This document shows positions 30,002-32,324 of a stretch of 64,000 nt of DNA, in pieces (position 1 is the stretch's first letter; the number at the start of each line of letters is the position of its first letter). A program made the translations under genes and the position numbers. The stretch is taken from NCBI RefSeq assembly GCF_964204645.1, contig NC_134036.1:9341859-9405858 (forward strand). Reading direction: 5' to 3'. The notes under the pieces are model-generated. The model had not been told where the DNA came from, did not search any database, and worked only from the letters and a program-made list of their open reading frames with translations. Source of the DNA: Tubulanus polymorphus (Eukaryota; Animalia; Nemertea).

Positions 30002-30474
30002 GTACTAGTTAGCTAAAGTTTGTGCTCTAGTTAGCTTTGTCGAATTGATTGGGATTAGTACCCCGGCAGTTGCATTATCAACGGTGATTTGCTTTAATCC
30101 AAAGCTTGAAAAGGTTTTGATCAATAAGAAATGTACAATTACGTATCACAATTATCCCGATGTCGGATTTGTCTTCATCCAGAGGCTTGTTTGTGAATTA
30201 TGTAGCATCTTTGCAAGGCTAACCATGAACTCGGTGAATTAATCGCGTGTTTGTTAGCTGCAGTGGTTTATACATACGAATGTATATTTCATATTCACCT
30301 ATGGGTTGTGTACCAATTTACCTACGGGGTGTATATATTATGCAAATGTACAACCAATTTACCTACGGGGTGTATATATTATGCAAATGTACAATGTATA
30401 TGCCAGCTCATTGGTAGGTCCTAAAATTGGACCCCCTAAGTTGGTTTGATATCATCACCCCATAAACATACTCT

Positions 30475-30574
30475 TATATATATATATATATATATATATA
30501 TATATATATATATATATATATATATATATATATATATATATATATATATATATATATATATATATATATATATA
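30475..30574. repeat. (TA)50 microsatellite at the junction of YR elements A and B
   Basis: Directly visible. Confidence 0.98.
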
Positions 30575-32324
30575 CTGAAAACATACTATTAACGGGGTTT
30601 GTGGGCTCAAACCCAATTGTGTGGTGCTATTTTAATACCCGTTTCTGGGGCATATATGTATAATTATATGCTAATGATATGCAAACCTCACAATTTATAT
30701 AGGCCTATATGCCCCATGAATTATATACGTTTCTGGGGCATATATGTATAATTATATGCTAATGATATGCAAACCTCACAATTTATATAGGCCTATATGC
30801 CCCATGAATTAAATACATGCACCTATACATGTAACATAACTGAAACTATGCCCTTCGTGTGGAATACCTGAGGCCAAACGCTTAGACATTACTAAACAGC
30901 GAATTATCTCACTGCCTATTCTATTGTAAGCGACCGGGCAACAGTCGGTTCTAACAGGTCTGGGTCGATTCATAACAATTGCGATAGGCTTTCCTACAGA
31001 GCTTCGTCCAAGTAAGATATACAACTTCCATATTTCTCCTTGCTTTGTCGGAATATTCTCTACTCTTCACTTCTATTCACATTTTTGAAATATGGCTCTA
31101 ATTGAGGGAATGAAAGTCCTTTCAAAGCTTTCAATATCCAGATACATCTGACAACAGAAACAAAACAAAATTTTCAATGAAAATTGGAAATCTCTTTATT
31201 AGGAAAAAAGCATTAGCAAATTTACAAACTCTACAAGATAATTCTGATATATTTATCAACCCTAGAATTGTAAACCACGAGGAAGTTGGATATTCTGCCA
31301 ATGGAATATTTTAATATTATTCATGTCATACATTCAAAATACAGTCGATACCTTCTGACTCAAATCATTTAGGACCAGTGATTTTCGTTATTTCAGTTAG
31401 GCGATAATTCAAGTTCCAATATGGAAATTCATGCTATGTTTCATAAGAATTGTGTAAAGATTAGCTGACCTGGAACTCGATGCGTTTACTATCCCAAATC
31501 AAATATGTTATACCGGTAGTCATTGGATTGTATGATATTTTGTCAACTGCAGATAAAACAGAAACTAATCACATTTTTTAATCATTATGTTCTCAACCTG
31601 AAATCAATGGCCTACAACAAATATACCTGATAGGAATGAGATTAGTCTACAAAAATACACCATTTACTTATGTTCACATCATTAAAAAAAAAACCTTCTC
31701 CACATTTTCTCCTGTAATCTAGTTCATTACATTTCTATAACAGGTGTAAGACTGGCATGAGGGAAATTCTAACATTTATTCAGATCGGTCATTTTTCATT
31801 TACTGCTTTAACAATTTATATACCGGTAATATATTTGATTTTGTTTAAACATTTTCTTCTAAACAGTAATCATTGCGCTTTAATAAAAGGAGAAATCGAT
31901 CAGAACAAAAACAAGCAATCATTGAAAGAAAACTCCACATACGGAATATCAATATATAGATATTATTTACATTGGGCACAGTGCTTAGTGGCAAAAACAA
32001 AGTTTCACATATCTTTAATTAGGACCATGGGTCCAGTACGACCAAATGAGTAAATTTTAGTTTTGAGCGAAAAAATGTATTTTTCTCGGATTTACGATCG
32101 CTATCTTGGTGCATTATATATGCATGTCCAACTTTCTCCAAAACTCACTCGCATGGCAAAACAATCAATACTATGTTCTATATGTACGTTCTTGCTACAG
32201 CTAAACAATAACGTAATTATTACAAAACATAAATAAAGTGAATTTGACGCATCGATTGACGCGTCAAAAATGCTATTTTAATTTTGACAGTATATTTACG
32301 CCATACATTTAGAGGTTCCCTATA

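Follow-up and report, generated by a model that had tools for sequence, protein, structure and literature searches.

How do two different tyrosine-recombinase (YR) transposons come to lie tail to tail on a single dinucleotide repeat? The question is raised by a 64,000-nt stretch of chromosome 12 of the nemertean Tubulanus polymorphus (C12:9341859-9405858, a chromosome-scale contig; hereafter the window, to which positions refer unless another sequence is named), wherein two elements, denoted A and B, abut opposite sides of one (TA)50 tract. The answer put forward herein is that A and B probably represent one animal lineage of Crypton-type DNA transposons whose integration sites are (TA)n microsatellites, and that B has docked next to a relic already resident there; Crypton-type elements carry a tyrosine recombinase and are without a reverse transcriptase or a DDE transposase. 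The two elements would share (TA)50 end to end because the whole lineage inserts into TA microsatellites.

The shared TA tract

Three features define the junction:

30475..30574, no strand: shared (TA)50 tract, the putative docking site; a perfect repeat, read from the sequence
30395..30474, minus (inward): terminus of element A on the recombinase-gene side, with a GGGG box 13 nt from the tract, a GGTCC/GGACC hairpin and a GGCATATA box
30575..30664, plus: terminus of element B on the recombinase-gene side, with a TTAACGGGG box 19 nt from the tract and a GGGGCATATA box ~53 nt further inward

The end of A reaches 30474 and that of B begins at 30575, with (TA)50 between them, and both recombinase genes are directed at the tract (A exons 20101-25486 on the plus strand, B exons 36118-32328 on the minus strand). 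The arrangement had been pointed out in a first-pass annotation of the window, whose quoted terminal strings match the sequence exactly and whose account of two YR genes facing the tract agrees with the exon mapping. Its claim of homologous ends in opposite orientation, each directly against the tract, is borne out by the collinear alignment of the two ends when read inward, with modest pairwise similarity (z = 3.4). The distinction between two families also holds, as the recombinase exons share 42-64% protein identity and the DNA of A and B can be aligned only at the ends. Homology does not continue across (TA)50: no other copy of B has A alongside, and neither of the two further copies of A (A2 and A3) has B. 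Heterologous family members thereby appear able to share one TA tract.

It is scarcely credible that the assembly was wrongly joined here at a microsatellite, or that the junction is a single palindromic structure. The tract and its flanking ends do form a 71-nt quasi-palindrome; however, each end is found alone elsewhere with its own TA tract, the tract is merely 100 bp long in a chromosome-scale assembly, and its two sides are unlike in sequence and gene content. Depth over the B end in an independent read sample is, moreover, ~five-fold, as predicted by five copies (the flank of the copy on chromosome 2 being repetitive).

Element B and its copies

Comparison of all five copies sets the limits of B, which are given here with the remaining repeat features of the element:

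30575..55133, minus: element B, whole, 24,559 bp, from the five-copy comparison
30640..30816, no strand: subterminal 88-bp repeat of B, present twice, each unit holding GGGGCATATA plus the inverted form TATATGCCCC
55024..55133, minus: gene-distal terminus of B, which has three GGGG boxes and repeats the gene-side end imperfectly in inverted orientation
55134..55223, no strand: (TA)45 tract at the other flank of B, followed by unrelated host DNA
50350..53468, no strand: 91-bp repeat arrays in which a GTGGCATATAAAACCC motif occurs; further arrays, oppositely oriented, are at 33477-33747 and 39688-40190

The five copies lie on five chromosomes, measure 23.5-24.6 kb and are ~99.4-99.9% identical, differing in length only within internal satellites; their left ends are identical. 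All five have (TA)n on both sides, from 5 to >50 units, and their outer flanks are unrelated. The element is thus far larger than the first-pass annotation had recognized, and its extent is corrected to 24.5 kb, with imperfect inverted ends (19/21 aligned positions match, z = 5.3) and a TA tract on either side.

The GTGGCATATAAAACCC motif of the 91-bp satellites resembles the conserved subterminal GGGGCATATA box, and the arrays are oppositely oriented between the two halves of B. Over 84 kb, GGCATATA occurs 16 times versus 1.5 expected, always within the 91-bp arrays or the termini. The arrays may be candidate accessory binding arrays for the recombinase. Separately, 3 kb past the right end of the chromosome-2 copy of B there is a distantly related recombinase homologue (27-33% identity), on the strand that points at this end (G000:C2:9606600-9607900, equivalent to positions 27038-28283 of the assembled chromosome-2 copy); the flank between the two is highly repetitive in reads.

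Specificity for TA microsatellites

The first-pass annotation had proposed, from this one junction, that integration is specific for (TA)n, and the wider genome sustains the proposal: five of five left ends of B and three of three ends of A adjoin (TA)n. The pattern (TA)6, up to 30 nt and TTAACGGGG has 48 matches, all of them B ends, versus none for the reversed control; a looser end pattern has 21 matches versus 6 in the control and finds two further chromosome 12 families, with recombinase exons directed at the TA-flanked end. Every (TA) tract of at least 7 units in the 282 kb examined lies at an element end. The target itself is common, and because the 268 Mb genome holds ~3,400 ends of (TA)15-or-longer tracts, chance TA adjacency is put at ~1e-5 per site. 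The lineage hence appears, from its genomic distribution, to be TA-microsatellite specific.

Further TA-flanked ends of related families were noted at G000:C12:9902304, 9943889 and 11149727, with CTGAAAACTATGCTTTTACGGGG once and CTCTTATATGTGCTAGATATGGGG twice; the small chromosome 12 seems enriched for this recombinase lineage.

Whether the tracts precede the elements bears on how such specificity is to be understood. It is possible, though not the favored view, that the long tracts were mostly brought or grown by the elements, wherein the circle junction carries its own (TA)n and a few TA units in the target suffice. Some junctions indeed have only (TA)4-5 (a locus in the nemertean Lineus, L036, and the right side of the chromosome-2 copy of B), and conservative exchange between circle tract and target tract would leave the summed tract length at the ends. 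Conversely, long tracts are abundant and exist independently of the elements, the ~3,400 ends comparing with a few tens of element ends, and in several flanking tracts the outer portion is interrupted and seems to be of some age. This alternative refines the proposal of TA-directed integration and does not oppose it.

An end architecture shared among phyla

Read inward from the tract, A and B alike present a (T/A)A(T/C)GGGG box, a CAAACC / GGT..ATTTTA stretch and a GGCATATA box ~75 nt in. The order (TA)n, GGGG box and then a GGGGCATATA-like box is also found in Lineus, Dreissena and Tegillarca, and the architecture in common can be written as (TA)n, 13-21 nt, a GGGG box, ~50-60 nt and a GGGG(C/T)ATATA box. 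The corresponding loci are as follows:

Lineus longissimus: two copies of a 47%-identical homologue, both with the end ..CCCCATAAATTGGTACTAGTAAG, which runs into (TA)4 in one copy and into (TA)7 in its counterpart
Dreissena polymorpha: a GGGGCATAT box, a TGTGGGGTG box and (TA)44, ~3.5 kb downstream of the recombinase gene, with a SET gene upstream of it
Tegillarca granosa: the gene-distal end adjoins (TA)34 and is box-for-box parallel to the distal end of B

The two-box motif occurs 6 times in 294 kb versus ~0.5 in shuffled sequence, and 5 of the 6 occurrences are TA-adjacent. An end architecture placed directly against TA repeats thus seems to be conserved in two nemerteans and two bivalves. 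At the Tegillarca tract (L039:2162-2489), a family-type terminus lies on the right and a TTGTGGGGAAG-repeat sequence on the left; this (TA)34 may be a second case of two elements on one tract, in a bivalve.

Coding content of element B

The coding features of B in the window are:

32328..36118, minus: recombinase exons 36118-34808, 34151-33975 and 33143-32919, plus a Myb/SANT-like C-terminal exon at ~32570-32328
36084..37265, minus: OTU-like cysteine-protease open reading frame (ORF)
45306..45530, minus: SET-domain fragment inside B, upstream of the OTU and recombinase features (Pfam E = 8e-7)

Whole-protein analyses were performed on the public RefSeq model of the chromosome-6 copy, P0006 (XP_074652770.1, 1179 aa), while the exons of the window copy were searched by reference and left unjoined. 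The window copy has a homopolymer (~36100-36112) one base longer than that of the chromosome-6 copy, and its OTU and recombinase ORFs are out of frame because of this frameshift near 36100; the remaining four copies of B have a continuous 744-aa open frame. In P0006, an OTU domain (residues 249-334) is followed by a Phage_integrase domain (PF00589, residues 910-1020; 29-32.5 bits versus the Pfam gathering score of 27.1), and a Myb/SANT-like exon closes the protein. The R, K, R, H, and Y columns are invariant across relatives, and the H of the HxxR motif, which varies among relatives, is replaced by K in B. An AlphaFold model of residues 650-1070 (pLDDT 81) finds XerH, XerD, XerA, Tn1549 Int, lambda Int, and Cre as its best fold matches in the PDB; these were found by the fold search alone, as a profile search against PDB sequences gave no recombinase match. 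Named relatives of the recombinase are nemertean, mollusc and fish proteins, and the T. polymorphus genome holds ~28 exon-level matches to it. On these domain and fold assignments, the sole recognisable recombinase of B is a tyrosine recombinase, fused to OTU in the public model and ending in a Myb/SANT-like tail. SET is present both within B and upstream of the Dreissena recombinase homologue (L038:1325-9553), and the SET-recombinase association is therefore conserved across phyla.

Neither the 1179-aa model nor the other ORFs of B, scanned with Pfam as ORF fragments, showed a DDE transposase, a reverse transcriptase or an RNase H, and beyond the features listed above the remaining ORFs gave no further enzyme domain; likewise, DUF3504 gave no match at E up to 1 in 13 family members, and no DUF3435 match was found in the recombinase family. 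These scans bear upon a quite different account, namely that a DDE cut-and-paste transposase with a TA target-site duplication (Tc1/mariner, MarCry, or Ginger2-like) moves the element and that the tyrosine recombinase is an accessory resolvase. DDE elements that target TA are known, including MuTAnT (PMC4486113), Ginger2-like nimaviruses in (AT/TA)n (PMC10871703), and MarCry-1_FO (PMC3212892), and the ends of B are inverted-repeat-like. Such a transposase is nevertheless very improbable here: in addition to the lack of any DDE match in these scans, the flanks of B are variable tracts of 5 to >50 TA units instead of a single TA, and in different phyla the recombinase gene is found together with the end motifs.

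Element A, its copies and its surroundings

The coding and repeat features of A were mapped as follows, the exons by tblastn with P0006, P0009, P0172, and B ORF fragments:

20101..25486, plus: remnant recombinase exons of element A at ~20101-20976, 22712-22861, 23380-23517 and 23589-23813, plus a Myb/SANT-like exon at 25310-25486
30312..30394, no strand: subterminal 41-bp repeat of A, two copies, each with a ACGGGGTG box (Tandem Repeats Finder, 100% match)

The recombinase gene of A is truncated: its exons, compared with those of B above, correspond to just residues 613-1177 of the B protein, and the first exon match is interrupted by stop codons. Chromosome 12 holds all three genomic copies of the A end; in each case a separate TA tract comes next, and the DNA past it is unrelated. 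Leftwards from this end, copy A2 is collinear with A at ~99.4% identity through an upstream (TA)85 tract and over a distance of at least 54 kb, and copy A3 has only 7.6 kb in common with A, at 98.8% identity. Because all three copies end there, the terminal tract of A is a breakpoint for large chromosome 12 rearrangements, and the right end of A is both a genuine terminus and a recurrent breakpoint.

These copies lend some substance to the reverse order of events, in which B was resident first and a duplication or recombination ending at TA tracts brought an A-bearing block beside it: A, A2, and A3 all stop at the tract, with unrelated DNA beyond and leftward homology of the lengths given. This order is nonetheless rather unlikely. 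The copies of B show 99.4-99.9% mutual identity, which is no lower than the identity of A with A2 (99.4%) and higher than that of A with A3 (98.8%). B is also the partner whose mobility is demonstrable, four of its copies elsewhere having kept an intact 744-aa frame. The earlier suggestion of independent insertions is shown for B only; A is a relic whose three copies lie within large chromosome 12 duplications that end at its terminal TA tract.

Several observations concern the surroundings of A. An inverted intrachromosomal duplication of at least 54 kb, at 99-100% identity, ends exactly at the terminal TA tract of A (window -20000 to 30474 versus G000:C12:10934458-10988727), and a third copy of its upstream part lies at 8.85 Mb on chromosome 12 (C12:8849712-8861456). 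Polinton-like genes are found to the left of the A recombinase, comprising a protein-primed PolB (DNA_pol_B_2; window 92-2135, minus strand) with a weak intein-splicing match and, in the same block, a Pox_A32-type packaging ATPase (window -1667 to -1056; L034:8333-8944, plus strand); no flanking inverted-repeat pair was found for this Polinton-like region. Three minus-strand ORFs of 245, 358, and 94 aa at 16668-20146 have no Pfam match; they abut the A recombinase gene and appear to truncate its 5' part.

The upstream (TA)85 tract (window -5052 to -4883) was considered as a possible left limit of A, and this placement was rejected, as the sequence on its right resembles no terminus. To its left, the sequence (L034:4824-4933; window about -5176 to -5067) ends ..CGTTTAAA and contains a TTTAAACG(A/G)GG motif; no recombinase homologue was found within 15 kb of it, and copy A2 repeats its last ~310 bp around a 2.4-kb insert that lacks a TA tract. 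A third docked element ("E") and a clean 35-kb "A" were both dropped because the A2 homology crosses (TA)85 and no recombinase homologue lies within 15 kb.

A proposed route to docking

On the favored interpretation, wherein TA-directed integration placed B beside A, the element would leave its donor site as a circle with both ends joined through TA repeats. Recombinase bound at the GGGG boxes would then exchange strands within the TA repeats of the circle junction and a genomic (TA)n, and this conservative exchange would divide the tract to both sides of the element, with no target-site duplication; Cryptons have been proposed to move via circles that recombine at short direct repeats (PMC3212892). 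Either orientation of insertion is possible because (TA)n is its own reverse complement. A resident A-family element, now decayed, would already have terminated in the TA tract, and a B-family element would later have integrated, most probably into that tract, to give the order A-end, (TA)50, B, (TA)45 and host DNA; the arrival of A before B is inferred. Because the tract adjoining a resident end stays a target, docking of B beside A is to be expected. As a rough estimate, the probability of at least one shared tract by chance is 5-15% for 15-25 elements distributed among ~2,000 long tracts.

Several points weigh against this interpretation. In classical tyrosine-recombinase core sites the spacer measures 6-8 bp, and the GGGG boxes of two ends lie very much further apart across a 100-bp TA tract. 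For B, neither an empty site nor a circular junction was found, the latter including a pattern search of the assembly for a head-to-tail or circle junction with a spacer of up to 64 nt. B is rich in introns, and the negative result for DDE transposase and reverse transcriptase depends on scanning its ORFs with Pfam as fragments. The copies of A look like segmental duplications that end at the tract, and they are not clean transpositions because the leftward homology to A2 runs for at least 54 kb; A itself is a decayed relative, a relic embedded in large duplications, of which only the right end is resolved. Finally, the local alignment of the A end (reverse complement) with the B end is modest when taken alone (empirical p ~0.006), although the homology becomes convincing because the box order recurs in the other end of B (z = 5.3) and in three other species.

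The elements may favor tracts that are already occupied. In the strongest form of this idea, resident ends would be preferred landing pads, with the GGGG box and the TA tract serving as a ready half-site; related and unrelated members would chain through TA tracts, and terminal tracts would also act as breakpoints for recombinase-mediated rearrangements or for transduction of neighboring DNA, e.g., the block of at least 54 kb with Polinton-like genes. This extension is considered improbable. If true, it would mean that an unannotated Crypton-like lineage across several phyla organizes microsatellite-linked structural variation in lophotrochozoan genomes.

Significance

Target-specific DNA transposons are rare in eukaryotes, and microsatellite-specific Cryptons are known essentially from one database note of 2012, which concerned cnidarians. 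The locus described herein supplies sequence-level evidence for a large (24.5 kb), very recently active tyrosine-recombinase element in a nemertean that uses (TA)n as its integration site, with a cis-acting end architecture kept between two nemerteans and two bivalves. A defined recombinase and a defined DNA site are thereby made available for biochemistry, the enzyme being a candidate site-specific integrase of eukaryotes whose target is both simple and abundant. The locus may also help to explain why transposable elements cluster, and why rearrangements have their breakpoints, at TA microsatellites. Docking as such is what target specificity would be expected to produce and calls for no new mechanism.

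Comparison with known systems

Among bacterial tyrosine-recombinase elements, lambda Int, Tn1549/Tn916 Int, and XerH are the best structural matches of the modeled B recombinase. Bacterial integrative elements proceed from circle to chromosome, with crossover in a short AT-rich or identical core, and the route proposed for B may be likened to theirs. Integration beside a resident copy at a regenerated att site is a known outcome for these elements. The B gene differs in being eukaryotic and intron-containing, and its target is a microsatellite of variable length as opposed to a unique att core.

The niche of (TA)n or (AT)n is shared with MuTAnT of Medicago (PMC4486113) and with the Ginger2-bearing endogenous nimaviruses of crabs (PMC10871703), the latter being, like B, very large elements; these systems employ DDE transposases, inverted terminal repeats and target-site duplications, whereas no DDE transposase was found in B. 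Like the Starship/Enterprise giants, B is large, carries cargo and has a tyrosine recombinase gene near one end. Those elements are, however, confined to fungi, bear a DUF3435-type recombinase at the 5' end and have other targets, and the B family gives no DUF3435 signal.

The nearest comparison is with the Cryptons, in which, as in B, a tyrosine recombinase is the sole recombinase and reverse transcriptase is absent (Goodwin et al., 2003; Kojima and Jurka, 2011, PMC3212892). Cryptons are described as being without inverted terminal repeats and having 4-6 bp direct repeats at both ends (PMC3212892); the TA repeats that flank B qualify as direct repeats, but the imperfect inverted repeats at its two ends depart from that description. 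Some CryptonF and CryptonS elements carry an added cysteine protease (Ulp1/C48), where B carries OTU. For CryptonA and its derived genes, DUF3504 matches with E-values of 8e-12 or better were reported (Kojima and Jurka, PMC3212892), in contrast to the B-family recombinase, which has no DUF3504 match.

CryptonV families that insert specifically into microsatellites, described from cnidarians, have been reported (Kapitonov and Jurka, Repbase Rep 2012;12:2034, as cited in PMC8869645), in keeping with the statement in the first-pass annotation that the CryptonV group is target-specific; because that article cites the CryptonV report, the principle of microsatellite targeting was already known. The elements described herein resemble CryptonV, as there summarized, in being tyrosine-recombinase DNA transposons that are met in microsatellites, and they are set beside CryptonV by description only; the hosts differ, the present elements coming from a nemertean and their relatives from a second nemertean and from molluscs, rather than from the cnidarians named in that source. 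Classical Cryptons are described as a few kb long and without inverted terminal repeats, whereas B spans 24.5 kb, its ends form an imperfect inverted repeat in which GGGG boxes are conserved, it lies within long TA tracts, and it includes OTU (and SET) modules. In summary, the lineage appears to differ from known Cryptons in host phylum, in size, in its inverted ends with conserved boxes, and in its OTU/SET modules.

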